Shown: positions 7,971 to 37,582 of the stretch, one piece after another | Position numbering within the stretch: the stretch's first letter is position 1 | Layout of the letters: the number at the start of each line of letters is the position of its first letter | Sequence record: KJ019103.1 | Reading direction: 5' to 3' (one strand) | DNA length: 64,000 nt | Notes under the pieces: generated by a model | Database searches by the model: none | What the model was told of the DNA's origin: nothing | Seen by the model: only the letters and a program-made list of their open reading frames with translations | Made by a program: the position numbers and the translations under genes

Positions 7971-8870
7971 ATGAAGGAACGCAGAAAGTATCCAACCGTA
8001 TTGAGGTATCCAGGCGGTAAGTCTAGGATTATCTACTATTTGTTTAGGGAAAATATGATCCCTAAGAATGTCAAGGAATACCGTGAGGGTTTCCTAGGTG
8101 GGGGTTCTTGTGCTCTTGCGTTTTCTGTGATGTATCCAAACACCCCAGTTTGGGTCAATGATCTTTACTACAATCTGTATATCTTCTGGACACAACTCCA
8201 GAAGAATCCAGATCCACTTATCAATCGTCTCCTAGAACTAAAGGACGAAGCCTGTGATGCATCAGGTACAGAAGAACTAGAGAAAAAGCATAGAAAACTC
8301 TACACAGATATGCGTGATCTCATTAACACCTCTAGTGATCACCTTGATATTGCAACCTCCTTCTACATTCTAAACCGATCTAGTTTCGGTGGATTCACTG
8401 AACAAAACAAGAATGCCTTCATCCGAGACTCATACAAGAATACTATTTTCTCTCAGAGTAAAATCCGTAAGTTGGCTAATATCTCTGAGATTATCCAACC
8501 CTGGAGAATTACCAATACACACTACAAGGAACTAATGAGAGCTCCTGGTGATGATGTATTTGTGTTCCTAGACCCTCCATATCTAATCAAGGATATGTTG
8601 TATGGTAAGGACAAGGAGATGCACACTGGGTTCTCTCATGAAGAGTTTGTGAGTGAGTGTAAAGGTTCTACACATGACTGGATGATTACCTACAATGAAC
8701 ATGAATGGTTGAGATCCCAGTTCGCTGACTATCATATGGAGTCTTTCGAGTTCCGTTATAGTCTCGCCCACAGGGAAGAGAATGGCAACAAGAAAGAAGA
8801 ACTCCTCATAATGAACTATGAGATTCCTCGTGATATCCCAAACCCACTAGAGGTAGTTTTGTATGGATGA
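7971..8870 (+). CDS. Dam-like (D12, alpha class) DNA adenine methyltransferase
   Basis: RYPGGKS, EGFLGGGS, FLDPPY. Confidence 0.93.
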   Translation: MKERRKYPTVLRYPGGKSRIIYYLFRENMIPKNVKEYREGFLGGGSCALAFSVMYPNTPVWVNDLYYNLYIFWTQLQKNPDPLINRLLELKDEACDASGTEELEKKHRKLYTDMRDLINTSSDHLDIATSFYILNRSSFGGFTEQNKNAFIRDSYKNTIFSQSKIRKLANISEIIQPWRITNTHYKELMRAPGDDVFVFLDPPYLIKDMLYGKDKEMHTGFSHEEFVSECKGSTHDWMITYNEHEWLRSQFADYHMESFEFRYSLAHREENGNKKEELLIMNYEIPRDIPNPLEVVLYG

Positions 8871-9318
8871 TCTAGAGCTAGAGTATCATCTTTATCTGGA
8901 TGGAAACCCTATTCAGACACTGAAGGATGACGCTAGTACAATGACTTTAGCCAAGAAGAGGGTTATTGGTCCTTACATTCGTAGAGCTGAATCTTTTATT
9001 AAAATATCAGAACCATTTAGGGAACTACTTCGTCTTGATGATGGTAAGGATAAACTTCTAGATGCAATAGGTGTTGTCTGGGCACACTACTTTGAACATA
9101 AGATTAACAAGAAGTATATGGTTATCCCTAAGGATGCATCTCTTGATTTTATGGAATACTTTGGTACTATGGTACAGAAGGATAAGTTTCCAGATGATAA
9201 ATATATTAAGAAAGCTCAGCGTATCATTCTCTCTCACGAAAAGAGTATTGATGCTTTCATTAAGGCTTTTCATAGTATCCGTTTAGCCAACGACAAATAT
9301 CTCTCCCTGAAGAAATGA
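8863..9318 (+). CDS. hypothetical protein
   Basis: ORF track; overlaps both neighbours. Confidence 0.75.
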   Translation: MDDLELEYHLYLDGNPIQTLKDDASTMTLAKKRVIGPYIRRAESFIKISEPFRELLRLDDGKDKLLDAIGVVWAHYFEHKINKKYMVIPKDASLDFMEYFGTMVQKDKFPDDKYIKKAQRIILSHEKSIDAFIKAFHSIRLANDKYLSLKK

Positions 9319-12176
9319 TCACACCGAAGTCCCTACTATCATTCCTATCTGAAGCCGCTGATTCTGAGGCTGCACAACAGGCTAAGGAGATGGGTTTAAC
9401 CTCTGCCGGTTATGGTAACTGGCGAGATAAACAGGGCAATGTTGTTGCCAAAACTGTAGATGGTCAGTTGGTGATGATTGACGCCAAGGCAGATCCTACG
9501 GCTAGACCAGCGGCACCTGAGGAGGAAATGCCACCTGAAGAGGAGGAGGAGCCCCAGTTTGTAGAACCAGATCCAGATATGGTTGAGACAGTAGCTAAGG
9601 GTCTTTCTGGTGGTAGATATAATATTGCATCAGCACAAAGGAAGAAAGCGTTACTGGCTTCTGCTAGACAGATATTAATCAATAAACAGATCCAAGACGC
9701 TCAGATGCAAGCCGATGCTGAAGCTCAGGCAGCGGCACAAAACCCACCAGAACCTACTCCAGAGGAGTTGGCACAACAACAGGCGGATATGGAACTACAG
9801 CAACAGAATGCTGTAATGGATACCGAACTGAAGGCACAGAGTGTTGAGAACGGGAAACTGGACCTTCAGATGAAGAAGGACCAGATGAAGCAACAGAAAG
9901 AGGCAGAGAAAGAAGCCAAGGCTATGGATAAGTTAGCCAAGAAGGCTCAGAGTCAGAAAGATCCTGGATCTATGGCTCAGAGGATGGCTAATGATGCTGA
10001 GTATGAGGCACAAGTTTCGAAGGATGGGGAAGAAGCTCTACTTGATGTTCAGACTGAACCTGATGTGGCTCCAGCGCCTAAACCAAAATCAAAGGCGTTA
10101 GATAAGGCTAACAAGAAAGCCAAAAAGATAGATACCACAGATTCTTCTGATAAAGAACTAAGATCTGCTGCTGATGATGTTATTCGTAGTCTACTCAGTG
10201 GAAACACTAAGAGGGCAGATAAAACATATAAAGAAATTAAGAGAAAGTCATTCAGTCAACTAAGAAATCAGACAGATAAACCACAGAAGAGGGAAGATCC
10301 TAAAGTAACAGAGGAGAGATTTGCCTCTCTAGTTGATAATATCGATCCTAACAATCTAGGACCTGGTATGAGATATGATCCCATCAGAGGAAAGGCTTCC
10401 GCTAAGACGGCGGTTCTAAGTGGATTTGATTCACCAGAAGATTTCCCAGAGTTTCAATCCAAAGAACTAAAAGGTCTCACCTCACTTATCAGAGACTATA
10501 TTGAGAAAGAGAACACTATGTGGTTCAACTCCGAGGTAGATAGGAAGAGTGGTGAAGGTGATTTCTCCCTAGATGGTTCTGAATACTTTAGTGATGAGGA
10601 AGCCAAGTCAGTGAATACAGATCTCAAGAACTCTGCTGATATTTCACAGTTCTTAGATTGGGGTCTAACCTCAACCAAGGCTGGGAAGTTTGGTGCGCAG
10701 AAACTAGCCTATCCACAGGAAAGAATGGCTCTTATTGATAACTATGATAGTGAGGAATCTACATCACCAGAAGAACTTGTGGCTAAATCAACCATCAATA
10801 AGGTTTCAGATAATGAGGTGGATAAATCTTGGAGTACTCTTTCTGGTTCTAAAAAGAAGTGGTTTGAGACTGCTGGTCACGGTAGGGGGGGATCACACCC
10901 ATACTGGAAGGAGAACCCAGAAGAGTGGGGCAAAGCTATGTTGAAGAGGTATCTAGAACAGGGTGGTAGGGATGGATACCTCCACTTTGAGGGAGCCCCA
11001 CCACTACAGTTCAAGGATATGGCAGCTGATCACGTAATCTCCTACGCAGATAACACTGATTATTGGAAGAAGAAAGCACTAGAAGAAGATCCAAACCTAC
11101 AGGGATCTGAACTAGCAGAGAGGGCAAAACGGATCTCTGATGACCCATCTAACATTATCTTCACCCGATGGGGATTCAATCAACAGCAGAAAGATAAGAA
11201 TCCTCTATGGGATGTTAGACAGAGATATGAGAAAGAATCTAAACAGGGTGCCTCGAAGCAAGATAATAAGGCACAGGAAAGTCAGAATAAAAAGAGGAGA
11301 GGTGAACTTCGTAATGAGTTGTATTGGAAACCACTTCAGGAAGCAGTTGGTGAGATAACAAAGAGGGACAAGAGTGGAAACATGAAGTTAACTCGAGAGG
11401 GTTATGATGAACTTCGTAATTATGCGAAAACTGGGTATCAGATGTTAGACAAATCTGGATATGGTAGAGACCTATCCAAATCTGCTGGCTTCTACCAGAG
11501 AAACGCTATGACAGACGCGTATCGTGCTCTAATTGGATCTATCAAACCTGGTATTCAGATCTTTGGTAGAGACAGACTCCGTGGTGGTGACGGACAACAG
11601 GCGAGTGACTGGCAGGGTATTGACGGAAAACACTCCAATACTGCGGCAGATGGAAACATAGATCAGGGATCAATGGTTGATCCAGGCACTGATTATGTGA
11701 AGCACGCTATGGCACAACTACACCTATTCGGTGGTGATAAAGGTAGACTTCTCGCCAAAGAATCTATGGATAGAATCAAGAGAGCGGGTGATGCTCTAGT
11801 TGTTGGTGATATTGGAACTGGAATGTTCACGAAATATATCGCTGATAACCTATCTGCTATGAAGCAACTAGCAGACGAGGGTGGTTTGGAATTGGATTAT
11901 GATGATGAATCTGGAGATCACCAGAGAATCCTTAACGCAAACATCATAAAGAATGTTCTAAAGGAGAAGAACCCTTCTGGTTATCGTTTGGAAGAAGATA
12001 TCTTCAATGAAGATAGACCAGCGATGAGAGGAAACATAGCGAAGAAGAGGAATGATGAAGAGTTCACTAGACTGAATGAGGATCTACGTGCACTTATGAA
12101 TCCTGGTGAATGGGATGAGATCTATAAGGATACTGTTCTTGAACAGTTTGAATATGATGGGGAACTTATGTTATAA
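9315..12176 (+). CDS. large probable virion-internal protein with central HNH-like nuclease motif
   Basis: N-term KSLLSFLSE/A plus a domain shared with ORF 16249; central RYLEQGGRDGY...MAADHVIS...DDPSNIIFTRWGFNQQQKD. Confidence 0.6.
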   Translation: MITPKSLLSFLSEAADSEAAQQAKEMGLTSAGYGNWRDKQGNVVAKTVDGQLVMIDAKADPTARPAAPEEEMPPEEEEEPQFVEPDPDMVETVAKGLSGGRYNIASAQRKKALLASARQILINKQIQDAQMQADAEAQAAAQNPPEPTPEELAQQQADMELQQQNAVMDTELKAQSVENGKLDLQMKKDQMKQQKEAEKEAKAMDKLAKKAQSQKDPGSMAQRMANDAEYEAQVSKDGEEALLDVQTEPDVAPAPKPKSKALDKANKKAKKIDTTDSSDKELRSAADDVIRSLLSGNTKRADKTYKEIKRKSFSQLRNQTDKPQKREDPKVTEERFASLVDNIDPNNLGPGMRYDPIRGKASAKTAVLSGFDSPEDFPEFQSKELKGLTSLIRDYIEKENTMWFNSEVDRKSGEGDFSLDGSEYFSDEEAKSVNTDLKNSADISQFLDWGLTSTKAGKFGAQKLAYPQERMALIDNYDSEESTSPEELVAKSTINKVSDNEVDKSWSTLSGSKKKWFETAGHGRGGSHPYWKENPEEWGKAMLKRYLEQGGRDGYLHFEGAPPLQFKDMAADHVISYADNTDYWKKKALEEDPNLQGSELAERAKRISDDPSNIIFTRWGFNQQQKDKNPLWDVRQRYEKESKQGASKQDNKAQESQNKKRRGELRNELYWKPLQEAVGEITKRDKSGNMKLTREGYDELRNYAKTGYQMLDKSGYGRDLSKSAGFYQRNAMTDAYRALIGSIKPGIQIFGRDRLRGGDGQQASDWQGIDGKHSNTAADGNIDQGSMVDPGTDYVKHAMAQLHLFGGDKGRLLAKESMDRIKRAGDALVVGDIGTGMFTKYIADNLSAMKQLADEGGLELDYDDESGDHQRILNANIIKNVLKEKNPSGYRLEEDIFNEDRPAMRGNIAKKRNDEEFTRLNEDLRALMNPGEWDEIYKDTVLEQFEYDGELML

Positions 12177-12177
12177 T
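12148..12177 (+). promoter_or_regulatory. early promoter of MTase cluster, inside 3' end of upstream gene
   Basis: TTGAAT-N18-TATAAT with TG extension. Confidence 0.7.
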
Positions 12178-12202
12178 ATAGAGAGTCTCTCTGTATTATA
12201 GT

Positions 12203-12976
12203 ATGATTGATCTGATCCACGAAGAGTGTATCGCTGGTATGAATAAACTCCCAGAGGGTAGTGTGGATGTGATTGTTACTTCCCCTCCCTACAATCTGGG
12301 TATCGATTATTCCACATATTCTGATAAGAAGGGTAGGGTAGAGTATTTGTCATGGATGCGGGATGTATTTCTTGCCGCCAGGAGAGTTCTAAAGGATCAG
12401 GGACATCTTTTTCTAAATGTTGGTTATTCTAATATTGATCCTTGGGTTAACATGGATGTTGCACAGACACTCCGTGAAGATTGGGTGTTGCAGAATAATA
12501 TTTGTTGGGTTAAATCTATTCACGTTGGGGATAAAACAACAGGACACTTCAAACCAATCAACTCCAAGAGGTTTATTAACCCAACATGGGAGTCACTATT
12601 TCACTTCACTAAAGACGGGAATGTGGAGATTGATAAACTAGGTGTAGGTGTTCCCTTTGAGGTGAAGTCTAATATCAAGAGGTGTGGTCACGCACAGGAC
12701 CTACGGGACAGGGGAAACAGTTGGTTTGTTCCCTATCCACACATCGCTAGGAAGCACCAGAAAGCAAACCATCCCGCTATCTTTCCTCCTGATCTGGTGA
12801 AGTTTTGTCTAAAGACTTCTGGTATTGATAAAGGTGTTCTGATGGATCCTTTTGTTGGAACTGGAACTTCAGCGTGGGTAGCACAAGAGATGGAATGGGA
12901 CTTTATAGGTTATGATATTGATGAAGAGTATTTGGATTTTGCTAGATCGAGGTTAATGAATGTCACAGCGTTTTGA
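12203..12976 (+). CDS. beta-class N4-C/N6-A DNA methyltransferase
   Basis: VTSPPY near N-term; HPAIFP; DPFVGTGT and GYDID near C-term. Confidence 0.93.
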   Translation: MIDLIHEECIAGMNKLPEGSVDVIVTSPPYNLGIDYSTYSDKKGRVEYLSWMRDVFLAARRVLKDQGHLFLNVGYSNIDPWVNMDVAQTLREDWVLQNNICWVKSIHVGDKTTGHFKPINSKRFINPTWESLFHFTKDGNVEIDKLGVGVPFEVKSNIKRCGHAQDLRDRGNSWFVPYPHIARKHQKANHPAIFPPDLVKFCLKTSGIDKGVLMDPFVGTGTSAWVAQEMEWDFIGYDIDEEYLDFARSRLMNVTAF

Positions 12977-13706
12977 TGTTGTTATTGGCAACCCCCCATA
13001 CCAGGATGGTAGTGGGGATAAAGAGAAGGGGTTATCTGGATCAAAGAAGAACCTATACTCTGCCTTTATCACCAAGAGTATTGAACTACTAAAACCCAAC
13101 GGATATCTATCATATATCTGTCCACCTGGATACATCAAAACAACTTCTATTGAGAAACCCTCACCACTATTCAAACTAATCCAACAGTATAATCTTATCT
13201 CTGTTGACTTCAATTGTAAGAAATACTTTCCAACAGTCTCCCTACCAGTCATCACCCGTTTCCTTCTACAGAACACAAAGGAATATAAGGGAACTGATTT
13301 TGGTAGTGAGGTCATTGATATTTCTCTTATGGATTATATACCTATCCATTGTTCCAAAGATACACTGAAACGGTTAGAAGAGGTAGTATCCAAGAAGAAA
13401 ACCCTAAACTTTAAGAGAGATGATAGTTTTGGGGTAGTGAATAGGTGTATCAAAGACAAAACTAACTTTGTCGTTATAGCACAAGTATCACCATCCAAAC
13501 TAGAAGTTTGTGTGAATGATGTATTGATAAATAAAAAGGGAAACAGGAAACCAGTTCATGTTATGGTATGTGATAATACTAGGCATGCGGAACGTATTGG
13601 TGATATAATGAGAAGCGAGAATGCCACATTTTTAAATACCACCCTACGATATGGTGATGGAAACGTCTATCCTGGAATCATTAACTACCTAAACTATGAA
13701 ATTTGA
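12960..13706 (+). CDS. Eco57I/gamma-class MTase C-terminal half (motif IV plus TRD, no motif I)
   Basis: Starts FDVVIGNPPY; NLYSAFI...LLKPNGYLSYICP; no FxGxG. Confidence 0.8.
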   Translation: MSQRFDVVIGNPPYQDGSGDKEKGLSGSKKNLYSAFITKSIELLKPNGYLSYICPPGYIKTTSIEKPSPLFKLIQQYNLISVDFNCKKYFPTVSLPVITRFLLQNTKEYKGTDFGSEVIDISLMDYIPIHCSKDTLKRLEEVVSKKKTLNFKRDDSFGVVNRCIKDKTNFVVIAQVSPSKLEVCVNDVLINKKGNRKPVHVMVCDNTRHAERIGDIMRSENATFLNTTLRYGDGNVYPGIINYLNYEI

Positions 13707-13737
13707 TGTTGTTATTGGCAACCCTCCATATCAGAAT
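12972..13737 (+). repeat. 36-nt direct repeat pair (12972-13007, 13702-13737)
   Basis: tttgatgttgttattggcaacccYccataYcagRat; 3 mismatches, 730 nt apart. Confidence 0.9.
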
Positions 13738-14601
13738 CCTGATGGTGTAAAGAACAAGAAGATCTGGTTATCTTTCTTTGATCTTGGTGTCTCTCTCCTA
13801 AAGGAGGGTGGCACTATGTGTTATATCACGCCCACCACTCACTTCTGGAGTTTGGGTAGAAAGTGGCAAACTGGTGTGTCTGCTGATATTCTACTGAAAC
13901 AGAACAACCTTCGTAGTGTAGATTTCACAACATCCAAACACTTCCCACAGGTTGGTGACTACATCTGCAACTATGTTCTACGCAAAGAACCTCCCAGTGG
14001 TATGGTAGATGTTATTGAGAAAGATGGGACAGAAGTTCTACGCCCACATAATGATGTCTATGATTGTGATGAGGAGAGACAAAAGGCAAAGTTCTTCTCT
14101 GCTATGAGAGAACTACGAGAGAAGTATGGGAAGTATCATATCCCCCACGACACAAGAGATAAGAGTCATTATAGTCAGACACAGGAGGGTGTGTATCAGC
14201 ATCCTACTTATATTTCGGCAGCAAAACAGATATGGTATGCTGACAGTCCTACACTAGGAACTGATACATTAAAGATTATTATGAATATGTCTTCCTACTT
14301 CTGGAATATCAATGATACTCAGAAGTATATGAGGATTGATTCAGGTCCTGGTGTTGGGTTATTGGGAAGAATGTTGGCAATTGATAGTGTGAAGGATGGT
14401 GAGAAGATAGTTGAGTACCTAACTTCACCACTAGTGAAGTTCTACATTGACTGTATGAAGAGAACATCCCCATGGAATCACGGGGTCTACCAGTTGCCAA
14501 AGTGTCACCATATGACAGAGGATGAGATTCTGGAAGAAATAGGTTATAATAAGGATGAGTTTTATAGCATGTATCCAGAACGTCTGGAAACCAAAGTATA
14601 G
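13696..14601 (+). CDS. second gamma-class MTase C-terminal half
   Basis: Starts MKFDVVIGNPPY; IWLSFF...LLKEGGTMCYITP; no motif I. Confidence 0.8.
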   Translation: MKFDVVIGNPPYQNPDGVKNKKIWLSFFDLGVSLLKEGGTMCYITPTTHFWSLGRKWQTGVSADILLKQNNLRSVDFTTSKHFPQVGDYICNYVLRKEPPSGMVDVIEKDGTEVLRPHNDVYDCDEERQKAKFFSAMRELREKYGKYHIPHDTRDKSHYSQTQEGVYQHPTYISAAKQIWYADSPTLGTDTLKIIMNMSSYFWNINDTQKYMRIDSGPGVGLLGRMLAIDSVKDGEKIVEYLTSPLVKFYIDCMKRTSPWNHGVYQLPKCHHMTEDEILEEIGYNKDEFYSMYPERLETKV

Positions 14602-14630
14602 TTGACAAGGGACCCCAGGTGTGTTATACT
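14602..14630 (+). promoter_or_regulatory. sigma70 early promoter
   Basis: TTGACA-N17-TATACT. Confidence 0.85.
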
Positions 14631-14655
14631 ATCTGGGTAGGTTAGGTTATTCTGT

Positions 14656-15537
14656 ATGGTGAAACCCCTGTTTAAGTGGACTGGTGGAAAGGGGCGACTA
14701 TTCCAGAAGTATCAAGATCTGAACTTCTTCCCAGAGGCAGACAGGTTCGACACATTTGTTGACCTGTTTTTTGGTGCTGGGTCAGTCACCCTTTGGGTTG
14801 CGGAGAAGTATCCAGATAAGAAACTCATTATTAATGATAAGAACACGGAACTTATGGGGTTATATACCCAAATACGTGATAACTGGGGTGAGTTTAGTGA
14901 GCACTATAAGAGAGTGTATAACGTATTCCTAGACACCCCAATAGAGAAAAGAAAGGCACTCTATAACTGTTATAAGAAGAGATATGCATGGAACTATAAG
15001 TGGTTGTCAGAAGCAGAGATTGCGGCAAACCTCTTGGTTATGATGAAGATTAACTTCAATGGTATTTGGTTAGCGTATAAGATGTATGGTCGTAGGTATT
15101 CTACGGCACCAGGGAAGATTGATTATAAAGAAAGTATCTTTGGTATGGAGAATGTGGAACAGTTCCGTCAAGTCCTACTACGGGCAACACTCTACAATAG
15201 ATCCTTTGAGGATGTTCCTATTCCTGATAACTCCTGGGTATTTGCTGATCCACCATACAGAGACACCAGAGATATGTATTCCGATACATTCACCGATGAA
15301 CTTCAGTCTAAACTGGCAAAGTTCATAGTTTCTACAGACGGACTATACTGTGAGTCTAATAAAGAAACTGGTGATGGTTTCTGGGGAGAACACTTCCCTA
15401 TGGAGAACATCCACTTCACAGATCACAAATACACTTGTGGTTATGGGGGATCCATTAACCCAGTCACTGAAGTTCTTATAAAGAACTATGGGAATAATAT
15501 CCCACAACCAACTACCCTTGATTCCTTTTTTAACTGA
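14656..15537 (+). CDS. Dam-like (D12) DNA adenine methyltransferase
   Basis: KWTGGKG, DLFFGAGS, FADPPY. Confidence 0.9.
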   Translation: MVKPLFKWTGGKGRLFQKYQDLNFFPEADRFDTFVDLFFGAGSVTLWVAEKYPDKKLIINDKNTELMGLYTQIRDNWGEFSEHYKRVYNVFLDTPIEKRKALYNCYKKRYAWNYKWLSEAEIAANLLVMMKINFNGIWLAYKMYGRRYSTAPGKIDYKESIFGMENVEQFRQVLLRATLYNRSFEDVPIPDNSWVFADPPYRDTRDMYSDTFTDELQSKLAKFIVSTDGLYCESNKETGDGFWGEHFPMENIHFTDHKYTCGYGGSINPVTEVLIKNYGNNIPQPTTLDSFFN

Positions 15538-15539
15538 TT

Positions 15540-16232
15540 ATGCAAAAGAAAAACCGTATCTCCCACGAAGAAGAAATTAAACTATGTCGTCAGGCACAAC
15601 TACAAGATCATACATCCAAGTATGCTATGACTAAAATGGTTAGTGCTAATATTGGGTTGGTTGAGAAACTCGCTAACAAACTCTACATCAAGAATGATCA
15701 ATACTCTTTCGATGATCTATACCAAGAGGGTGTATTTGGTCTTATCAGAGGAGTGAATAAGTTTGATCCTAGTGTTGGGTGTAGGTTTTCCACATATTCA
15801 TACTACTGGATCTATAGTTATATCATGAGGTATTGTGAGAATAACCTAGGCAAGATCCGTATTCCAACTCACCTCCGTGAGAAGATGAGGAAACAGAAAG
15901 ATAATAAAACAGAGTTGGATAAACTAAAATCAAAGGTTCCTTCAGTAGTATCATTGAATACAATAGTGGGTGAATCACTATCCTTGGATAATGTAGTTAC
16001 ATACACCGAGAATATCTCATTTGATGATGAGATGGAACATGTTTTGGTTGTTATGGGTGAGGTTTTAGATGAAAGAGAACACCAGGTTCTCTGTAGTAGG
16101 TTTGGTATTGGTGGTGAGAAACCACTATCCCAGAGAGAGTGTGCTAAACTACACAATGTTACACATGGTGCTATCTATTTGATTGAGAAGAAATCAATCA
16201 AGAAAATCAAACACTATATGGGGTATAAATAA
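15540..16232 (+). CDS. sigma70-family RNA polymerase sigma factor (divergent)
   Basis: Region 2 DLYQEGVFGLIRGVNKFDP..GCRFSTYSYYWI; region 4 VLCSRFGI...HTH. Confidence 0.88.
   Translation: MQKKNRISHEEEIKLCRQAQLQDHTSKYAMTKMVSANIGLVEKLANKLYIKNDQYSFDDLYQEGVFGLIRGVNKFDPSVGCRFSTYSYYWIYSYIMRYCENNLGKIRIPTHLREKMRKQKDNKTELDKLKSKVPSVVSLNTIVGESLSLDNVVTYTENISFDDEMEHVLVVMGEVLDEREHQVLCSRFGIGGEKPLSQRECAKLHNVTHGAIYLIEKKSIKKIKHYMGYK
16224..16231 (+). promoter_or_regulatory. T4-type late promoter (copies also at 17442, 19392, 45278, 54290, 55055, 56274, 58412)
   Basis: TATAAATA, the gp55 consensus, mostly just upstream of virion-type genes. Confidence 0.85.
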
Positions 16233-36392: not shown

Positions 36393-37582
36393 CAAAGATT
36401 ACAAATGGATATACGTGGCCTCTTATGAAGGACACTGTGACCAAGAGAGATAGGTTGAGGATGGCAAAGTTTATCCTCACCAGTGATAGACTAACACAAG
36501 GTAAAGAAGTTCGTAAGTTTGAGGAGCAGTGGAGTGAGTGGCTTGGAGTTAAACATTCTCTTTTTGTTAGCAGTGGCAGTACCGCTAACCTACTTCTTGT
36601 GTCTGCTTGGAAGGAATTATACGAGATCCCAGACCAGTCGAAAGTAATTGTACCTGCTTGTACTTGGGTAACTAATGTTGCTCCTATCATTCAGTGTGGT
36701 TTGACTCCAATCTTTTGTGACATCAACTTAGAAGACTACTCCTTTGATCTGGATAAACTACAGGATATTCGTGATGAATATCACGATGACATCAGAGGTA
36801 TCTTTGTTACTCACCTCCTAGGATTTCCTGCTAATGTGGAAAAGTTTCGTGATGTTTTCCCCGACGCTCATATTCTAGAAGATGTATGTGAGAGTCACGG
36901 AGCAGTCCTCCCTAGTGGTGATAAGGCGGGAACCTTTGATGTTGGTGGCACATTTAGTTTCTACTTTGGGCACCACATGACTACCATTGAAGGTGGTATG
37001 GTGAGTACTAATGATCCAGAACTCTATGATCTAATGAGAATGAAGCGTTCTCATGGGTTAGCGAGAGAATCACTATACTTTGAAACATACAAAGAGAAGT
37101 ATCCTGATGTAAATCCACAGTTTCTCTTCGTTACTGAGGGATATAACTTCCGTAATACTGATCTAGCTGCTGTATTAGGACAGTCTCAACTGAAGAGACT
37201 AGACAGTATGATTGGGATTCGTAACAGGAACTATGAGTTATACCAACAATTACTAAAGAAACACGAACATGACCTTACACATGAGTATGGTGGTTCTTTC
37301 TATATCCCCTCCACACAGGGGGATGTAAGTAGTTTCTGTTTTCCATTTGTAGTTGATAATATGCACTGCTATCTTAAGTTAAAAGAACTTCTAGAAGAAT
37401 ACTATGTTGAGTATCGACCTATTGTGAGTGGTAACCTCCTACGACAACCATTCTTGAGAGAATATTCTGCTGAGTGTCCCAAGGCAGATATAGCCCATGA
37501 AAAGGGACTATATATTGGGAATAATCACTTTGTAGATGAGTCTAACTTTCACATGCTAGATGAGATTTTGAGCCAACTTTGA
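36389..37582 (+). CDS. PLP-dependent sugar 3-dehydratase, ColD-like (DegT superfamily)
   Basis: SSGSTANLL, EDVCESHG, GTFSFYFGHHMTTIEGG with His at the usual Schiff-base Lys position. Confidence 0.85.
   Translation: MTKITNGYTWPLMKDTVTKRDRLRMAKFILTSDRLTQGKEVRKFEEQWSEWLGVKHSLFVSSGSTANLLLVSAWKELYEIPDQSKVIVPACTWVTNVAPIIQCGLTPIFCDINLEDYSFDLDKLQDIRDEYHDDIRGIFVTHLLGFPANVEKFRDVFPDAHILEDVCESHGAVLPSGDKAGTFDVGGTFSFYFGHHMTTIEGGMVSTNDPELYDLMRMKRSHGLARESLYFETYKEKYPDVNPQFLFVTEGYNFRNTDLAAVLGQSQLKRLDSMIGIRNRNYELYQQLLKKHEHDLTHEYGGSFYIPSTQGDVSSFCFPFVVDNMHCYLKLKELLEEYYVEYRPIVSGNLLRQPFLREYSAECPKADIAHEKGLYIGNNHFVDESNFHMLDEILSQL

Follow-up and report, generated by a model that had tools for sequence, protein, structure and literature searches.

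Two tandem genes for putative C-terminal half-methyltransferases and a separately encoded candidate cofactor-binding half in the marine cyanophage ACG-2014f

To our knowledge, only a couple of natural split DNA methyltransferases (MTases) are known, and these are cytosine-C5 enzymes. One of them, M.AquI, comes from a marine cyanobacterium. Both M.AquI and M.EcoHK31I are naturally composed of two polypeptides, and in each case both chains are needed for activity (PMC3404938). Here we describe two tandem genes, cassette 1 (c1) and cassette 2 (c2), in a 64,000-nucleotide (nt) stretch of sequence record KJ019103.1, hereafter the window. Comparisons of sequence and predicted structure make it probable that c1 and c2 are the catalytic-plus-specificity subunits of a split gamma-type (TaqI/CamA/Eco57I-like) N6-adenine MTase, the half that binds S-adenosylmethionine (AdoMet) being a 134-amino-acid protein encoded elsewhere in the genome. 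As predicted, this system would share with M.AquI and M.EcoHK31I, its closest precedents, the division of one MTase fold over two separately translated polypeptides. In the literature searched, we found no report of an adenine MTase cut in the middle of the Rossmann fold with a small free cofactor half, and nothing specific on split adenine MTases or cyanophage MTase cassettes.

Positions 12000 to 15600 of the window are 100% identical to Synechococcus phage ACG-2014f isolate Syn7803US44 (KJ019103.1), a marine T4-like cyanomyovirus of the family Kyanoviridae; a position in that record minus 124000 gives the position in the window. On the plus strand, c1 (12960 to 13706) encodes 248 amino acids recognized by Pfam as the C-terminal half of a gamma-type N6-adenine MTase, and c2 (13696 to 14601) encodes a second such half of 301 amino acids that matches positions 66 to 347 of the 348 in phrog_3689. 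The products begin MSQRFDVVIGNPPYQ (c1) and MKFDVVIGNPPYQ (c2), which places motif IV, FDVVIGNPPYQ, at residues 5 to 15 and 3 to 13, respectively. Profile PF07669 (Eco57I) matches both products only over its positions 73 to 171 of 171, and PF02384 (N6_Mtase) matches c1 over positions 123 to 238; no motif I was found in either product by Pfam scan. An earlier note on this DNA had described two tandem half-MTases opening at motif IV without motif I, and every element lies where it was placed. Nothing resembling the AdoMet-binding motifs X and I to III precedes motif IV, since the open reading frames (ORFs) begin two to four residues before it, and the frames 5' of both starts are closed or belong to other genes. 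The c1 product thus consists of motif IV, the catalytic half, and its own target-recognition region, without motifs X and I to III. Because these motifs are missing from the same polypeptide, c1 and c2 are by themselves incomplete members of the gamma class. Outside a short shared repeat, identity between the two products is 23% and no alignment is obtained for the C-terminal regions, which bears out the description of their target-recognition regions as unrelated.

If the enzyme is split, a partner ORF with motifs X and I to III but no NPPY should be encoded elsewhere in the genome, as the earlier note had proposed, and one is present. Located at KJ019103.1 36433 to 36837 (L017:1501-1905), outside the window and about 100 kilobases (kb) from c1 and c2, this 134-residue ORF (the N-half) carries motif X (GEVFTP), motif I (FLDNSAGCGNF), motif II (YCVE), and motif III (VRANAL), followed by a short tail (YDYSF...LESFF); it stops just short of where motif IV would begin and has no NPPY. 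A PF02384 scan of the whole of KJ019103 gave two matches only, c1 (profile positions 121 to 238) and the N-half ORF (20 to 90), while PF07669 matched c1 and c2 only over the whole genome and an N-half profile returned the 134-residue ORF as its single match in the KJ019103 genome. The N-half is encoded in all 26 of 26 ACG-2014f records at 96 to 100% identity, and at 56 to 74% identity in S-CAM7, Bellamy, S-SKS1, P-SSM2, P-SSM5, and MC09. As a stand-alone family it comprises 214 clusters (E <= 0.001), the best 120 of which are all 113 to 146 residues long, and little or no variation is seen in TGEVFTP, the F.D..AG.GNF loop, Y..E, and DNH. With the cofactor-binding half in a separate small gene, the enzyme is probably built from separately encoded, exchangeable parts.

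Models of the two halves point in the same direction. The AlphaFold2 model of c2 (predicted local distance difference test score [pLDDT], 80.8; predicted template modeling score [pTM], 0.74) has strand beta-4 as its first element and consists of the catalytic half of a Rossmann fold and a C-terminal TaqI-like recognition domain. It aligns with residues 125 to 576 of M.BseCI, 157 to 577 of CamA, and 97 to 412 of M.TaqI (Z scores of 9 to 10.8); a PDB sequence search with a c2 profile gave marginal TaqI matches and nothing more. The class assignment of c1 comes from Pfam alone. For the N-half, modeled from the TARA homologue P0059, the core is confident and the last 30 residues fall below a pLDDT of 50 when the protein is folded alone; the model aligns with CamA 28 to 159 (Z scores of 4.4 to 6.1), and the N-half profile matches CamA 25 to 83. 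In these models, the N-half (CamA 28 to 159) and c2 (CamA 157 to 577) tile one enzyme without overlap.

In the proposed mechanism, c1 and c2 would each supply beta-4, which bears the NPPY adenine pocket, as well as the other catalytic strands and a target-recognition domain of their own, and the 134-residue subunit would supply motif X and strands beta-1 to beta-3 with motifs I to III, the division point falling precisely where motif III gives way to motif IV. Beta-1 of the small subunit would pair with beta-4 of either large subunit, completing the seven-stranded fold, and one cofactor subunit could in this way give rise to two enzymes of different sequence specificity. Together with a beta-class and two Dam-type MTases, these would allow the phage to premethylate its own DNA against host restriction, and co-occurring genotypes would come to differ in their methylation repertoire as large-subunit genes are gained, lost, or exchanged at gene boundaries. 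That the halves physically assemble, that the product is active, and that the ACG-2014f N-half serves both c1 and c2, we infer; what the comparisons show directly is the anatomy and conservation of the halves, their synteny and natural fusions in relatives, and the variation in populations.

Relatives of c1, c2, and the N-half were collected by word search of metagenomic clusters. The c2 family has at least 24 clusters at 51 to 98% identity, all of 301 or 302 residues; every member opens with methionine and one or two further residues, then FDV..GNPPYQ, and G8, N9, P10, P11, and Y12 are invariant. Between lineages, the ratio of nonsynonymous to synonymous substitution rates (dN/dS) for c2 is 0.05 to 0.14, with synonymous sites saturated. 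Two c2 alleles within ACG-2014f, from the genome arrangements called type A and type C below, have 22.7 synonymous and 18.3 nonsynonymous differences (dN/dS of 0.19), and selection is therefore at work inside the ACG-2014f lineage. Two c1 relatives, at 58% and 51% identity, have the same length and the same start at motif IV. With intact frames and a dN/dS of 0.05 to 0.19 for c2, the pseudogene outcome for which the earlier note allowed is unlikely, and the two half-genes represent conserved truncated families, not debris.

Relatives at a greater distance, encoded in S-CAM7, Bellamy, MC09, and at another ACG-2014f locus, have 55 to 100 extra N-terminal residues and keep an internal methionine right before FDV, which accounts for the 65 positions by which PHROG 3689 exceeds c2. 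In the “full-length” relatives of c1 and c2, the N-terminal Rossmann-like segment has a motif I that lacks the glycine loop (for example, LFDAGCVIA, VFDTFLTLT, and VVDCLNAYG), and genes of this kind (L004:2306-3352, L005:2138-3391, L009:1288-2469, and L028:2114-3004) adjoin a canonical N-half gene. On the contig of the c1 relative P0039 (GCA_002998485.1; 58% identity), a 258-residue gene, the c1-like gene, and an overlapping next gene follow one another; the layout is the same as in the window, and the trio of beta-class MTase, c1, and next gene may therefore be conserved.

The two kinds of half-gene are neighbors in other genomes. In five contexts, an N-half gene lies directly downstream of, and overlapping, one that opens at motif IV: TARA contigs L019, L024, and L035, P-SSM2 gp036/gp037, and S-CAM7 00075/00076. 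On the three TARA contigs, the first gene of the pair is a c2 orthologue. L019 and L035 represent an orthologous locus, at which the same large upstream gene ends and the same TATAAT element is found, and L035 keeps the stop codon inside TTTGAT; the ancestral arrangement was therefore the large gene, c2, and then the N-half. ACG-2014f has a Dam gene 3' of c2, where L019 and L035 have the N-half, and this difference is the starting point for the idea that c1 and c2 are orphaned remnants in ACG-2014f, which lost their cognate N-half when the Dam gene came after c2 and are now decaying. The two nonsynonymous and zero synonymous differences available for c1 within the species would suit such decay. 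Against it, both frames are intact in all 26 to 35 ACG-2014f records, the type A and type C alleles of c2 show the selection noted above (dN/dS of 0.19), the c1 relatives keep the same length at 51 to 58% identity, and every genome retains an intact N-half. We regard decay as improbable.

Halves joined in a single protein were also found. An exhaustive N-half profile search gave 3,868 matches, the best being free proteins of 100 to 160 residues. P0193 (399 residues) and P0237 (416 residues) open at motif IV and close with an N-half (E of 2e-32 and 2e-23, respectively). In P0193, Eco57I profile positions 75 to 156 match residues 2 to 64, N6_Mtase positions 20 to 118 match residues 271 to 373, and residues 1 to 149 align with c2 beginning at its third residue (E of 5e-13). 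The opposite, gamma order, N-half and then C-half, is found in P0198, P0228, and P0281, and in P0198 the tail of the N-half directly abuts FDVIVGNPPF. Other settings of the N-half include positions after Eco57I-type MTases with N-terminal domains of their own, often without the glycine loop, and after a nuclease-like ORF of 187 residues that lies behind an MTase with its own N-terminal domain. In P0213, P0321, P0197, and P0247, the N-half is joined to unrelated N- or C-terminal regions without NPPY or, in one case, stands as two tandem copies before a single NPPY half.

These observations bear on a different account, in which the C-halves function without the 134-residue protein, alone or as homo-oligomers, in a role for which AdoMet is not required (sequence-specific DNA binders, for example, or base-flippers, shielding sites or serving as decoys against restriction), or in which the N-half does something separate, such as sequestering AdoMet or regulation. 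Purifying selection shows that there is a function, not which one; the genes lie 100 kb apart in ACG-2014f, where the adjacent short-type N-half of the orthologous loci is missing; and N-halves are found beside MTases with their own N-terminal domain or joined to unrelated domains (P0213, P0321, and P0197). However, NPPY and the residues of the catalytic half do not vary within the c2 family, an invariance that is difficult to account for unless there is catalysis; overlapping pairs occur in five independent contexts and fusions in both orders; and in a C-half that opens at the central beta-4, the edge of the sheet normally covered by beta-1 would be exposed. We consider this account unlikely, though less so than decay.

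Several observations weigh against the split-enzyme interpretation itself. The halves are unlinked in ACG-2014f, and the N-half that adjoins c2 at the same locus in relatives is of a short subtype (120 to 128 residues), while the sole ACG-2014f N-half is of a long subtype (about 134 residues) that is 54 to 57% identical to the short one. Given this mismatch and the unlinked genes, cross-pairing has to be assumed; in P-SSM2 and S-CAM7, however, N-halves of the long subtype do lie behind genes that open at motif IV. Several phages place the N-half after MTases with an N-terminal domain of their own, one of which (L026) has a complete motif I; the N-half therefore need not be a missing half in every case and may do something further. 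S-CAM7 holds two N-half paralogues, each adjoining its own partner, a hint of cognate pairs instead of one universal subunit. The structural match of the N-half is, in addition, a weak one (Z scores of 4.4 to 6.1). The earlier note's proposal, a split gamma-class MTase with interchangeable specificity subunits, nevertheless gains support from the partner ORF, the linkage, the fusions in both orders, and the conserved families.

Two other candidate sources of the missing half were rejected. Nothing in the KJ019103 genome corresponds to the N-terminal 65 residues of S-CAM7 gp056, and the 953-residue gene upstream in the window, with its variants, ends in non-Rossmann sequence. The N-half gene is flanked by small ORFs of 178 to 212 residues, located at L017:1986-2522 (KJ019103.1 ~36918-37454), L009:601-1239, and L005:3393-3956, which have PD-(D/E)xK nuclease-like motifs as judged by eye; two that were scanned had no Pfam match. 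In modules of the Bellamy type, a nuclease-like ORF lies between the MTase and the N-half, an arrangement that, in a lytic phage, would point to a compact restriction-modification-like unit.

Directly upstream of c1, on the plus strand, positions 12203 to 12976 encode a complete beta-class N4/N6 DNA MTase of 257 residues (phrog_67) that matches PF01555 over positions 1 to 219 of 221 (E of 6e-44), a full-length domain with SPPY at residues 27 to 30 and FVGTGT at residues 217 to 222. Its motifs I and II are C-terminal because that is the normal beta-class motif order, not because it is half an enzyme. The earlier note had placed these motifs correctly at the end of the upstream MTase, yet they form part of a complete beta-class enzyme, which is an independent enzyme and not the missing half of c1 and c2.

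This arrangement had suggested a programmed +1 frameshift at TTT-TGA (12971 to 12976) that would fuse the beta-class MTase to c1, its C-terminal motifs I and II acting as the AdoMet-binding part, with ATT-TGA fusing c1 to c2. UUU-UGA is a plausible +1 slippery site before a stop, the fused reading would run motif I, motif II, NPPY, which is the gamma order, and the sole longer contig with a c1 relative has an overlapping 258-residue gene upstream. But the complete beta-class enzyme needs motifs I and II for its own SPPY strand, and strand beta-3 would be missing from the fusion; AUU-UGA, at the second junction, is not a slippery site; and GAGG lies 7 nt before the ATG of c1. In isolate Syn7803C16, c1 stands free behind a 23-nt gap, with its own promoter-like site and start, and in about 19 isolates, as on contigs L019, L024, and L035, the gene before c2 is a large unrelated one. 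A gene reached by frameshifting would have no start of its own and its fusion would be conserved, whereas c1 and c2 have ATG start codons and stand free in other isolates and contigs, each behind its own promoter-like site. Frameshifting is therefore highly improbable.

The two genes share a direct repeat over the motif IV codons. Copy 1 (12972 to 13007, plus strand), 36 nt encoding FDVVIGNPPYQ(D), holds the TGA stop of the beta-class MTase (12974 to 12976), and copy 2 (13702 to 13737, plus strand) holds the TGA stop of c1 (13704 to 13706). The copies are near-identical, as had been reported, at 34 of 36 nt, and the similarity decays to 77% over 57 nt. At least 9 of the 11 codons are identical, for which P is about 0.009 under the codon usage of the window, so the codon-level identity goes moderately beyond chance. 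At both junctions the TGA within TTTGAT is the stop codon of the preceding gene (the beta-class MTase and c1, respectively). The earlier claim of this overlap is correct for the window but is not general, since in Syn7803C16 and a TARA contig the half-gene has a gap of 23 to 27 nt in place of a stop overlap.

Arrangements of the locus were surveyed in 45 phage records and four metagenome runs. Type A (five records) has the beta-class MTase, c1, and c2; type B (two records) has c1 and c2, with the 23-nt gap before c1; and type C (about 19 records) has c2 alone, overlapping the large gene. The beta-class MTase is missing from type B and type C isolates, and c2 occurs in every ACG-2014f arrangement type. 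In metagenome contigs, the type A and type C junctions are found together in the same seawater samples, with further junctions at 12169, 13692, and 14601. The earlier note had proposed that recombination between the repeats would replace cassette 1 by cassette 2; no such event was seen in the survey, and the variant breakpoints coincide with gene starts and stops (12169, 13692/13696, and 14601), not with the interior of the repeat. The 730-nt deletion that such recombination would leave was found in none of the 45 records and four runs, although contigs can miss rare variants, and direct joining of the beta-class MTase to c2 was seen in 0 of 45 records and at no joint in the four runs. Contigs from an RNA library span parts of all three genes, which shows their presence and does not prove transcription.

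At the 3' end of c2, an HNH endonuclease gene has been inserted in isolate Syn7803US17 precisely at the boundary of c2 with the Dam gene (L030:3089-3592; KJ019086.1 138892-139395), corresponding to about position 14601 in the window, where metagenome contigs break as well. A homing endonuclease could drive cassette mobility near 14601. Between types A and C, synonymous divergence (dS) is 0.135 for c2 and 0.006 for the adjacent Dam gene, a sharp mosaic boundary at the end of c2.

A sigma-70-type promoter-like site (12148 to 12177, plus strand; TTGAAT, 18 nt, TATAAT with TG) lies inside the end of the 953-residue gene and probably drives the beta-class MTase, c1, and c2 as an operon; other isolates and metagenomic relatives alike have the same TGnTATAAT element 25 to 30 nt before the half-gene begins. 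The operon is closed by a strong promoter-like site (14602 to 14630, plus strand; TTGACA, 17 nt, TATACT) that precedes the Dam-type MTase gene (14656 to 15537; PF02086 match). The 953-residue gene (window positions 9315 to 12176), annotated “cytitidyltransferase,” holds the promoter-like TGTTATAAT of the methyltransferase operon in its last codons, and its 3' end differs by arrangement type, giving 796, 892, or 953 residues. The region is an unusually dense methylation island, with three complete MTase genes in 8 kb besides the two halves: the beta-class gene at 12203 to 12976 and the Dam/D12-like genes at 14656 to 15537 and 7971 to 8870, the last assigned from its motifs alone.

A broader view, which we put forward tentatively and with less confidence than the split enzyme itself, is that marine T4-like cyanophages share a modular split MTase in which one constant small AdoMet-binding subunit can complete any of several interchangeable large ones in trans, even from genes 100 kb apart, that populations thereby retune their anti-restriction methylation as large-subunit cassettes are gained, lost, or swapped, and that the free halves and the fusions in both orders are a living gamma/beta fission-fusion intermediate. 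If the halves do assemble, many cyanophage genes that are annotated as hypothetical or misannotated would be explained, including more than 200 N-half clusters and dozens of motif-IV-start genes. Phages would have a cheap route to diversify methylation specificity against host restriction, there would be evidence from nature that fission and fusion can lead to the permuted motif orders by which the MTase classes are defined, and a ready-made natural split pair would be at hand for engineering targeted methylation. We know of no one who has shown that MTase classes arose by fission and fusion. A fission-and-fusion model of MTase circular permutation has been put forward (PMC3320104), and the presence of the halves as independent polypeptides in relatives is the kind of evidence for which that model asks.

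Compared with known enzymes, the phage system differs from its closest precedents in where and how the fold is divided. M.AquI is cut in a variable region and M.EcoHK31I at motif IX, whereas in the phage enzyme the cut would fall within the Rossmann sheet, after motif III and before motif IV. The former two are C5-cytosine enzymes with adjacent or nested genes, whereas the phage system would be an N6-adenine enzyme of the gamma type with genes that are unlinked in ACG-2014f, and its small subunit would be the AdoMet-binding half, serving several alternative large subunits. M.TaqI and CamA are the nearest likenesses in fold, c2 matching TaqI 97 to 412 and CamA 157 to 577 and the N-half matching CamA 28 to 159; however, M.TaqI, CamA, M.BseCI, and BREX PglX/BrxX have both halves in one chain, and c1 and c2 have no equivalents of TaqI residues 1 to 96. 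The Type I HsdM/HsdS and Type IIB BcgI A/B systems similarly combine a constant part with exchangeable specificity parts and undergo gene or domain shuffling, but in these the whole catalytic domain resides in one subunit, whereas the variable subunit of the phage would carry half of the catalytic fold together with the recognition domain. The motif order of beta-class amino-MTases (IV to VIII, target-recognition domain, X, I to III) is the same as the C-half/N-half gene order and that of P0193 and P0237, while P0198 and similar fusions have the gamma motif order. Unlike the beta-class enzymes of PF01555, both halves group with the gamma class by sequence and fold.

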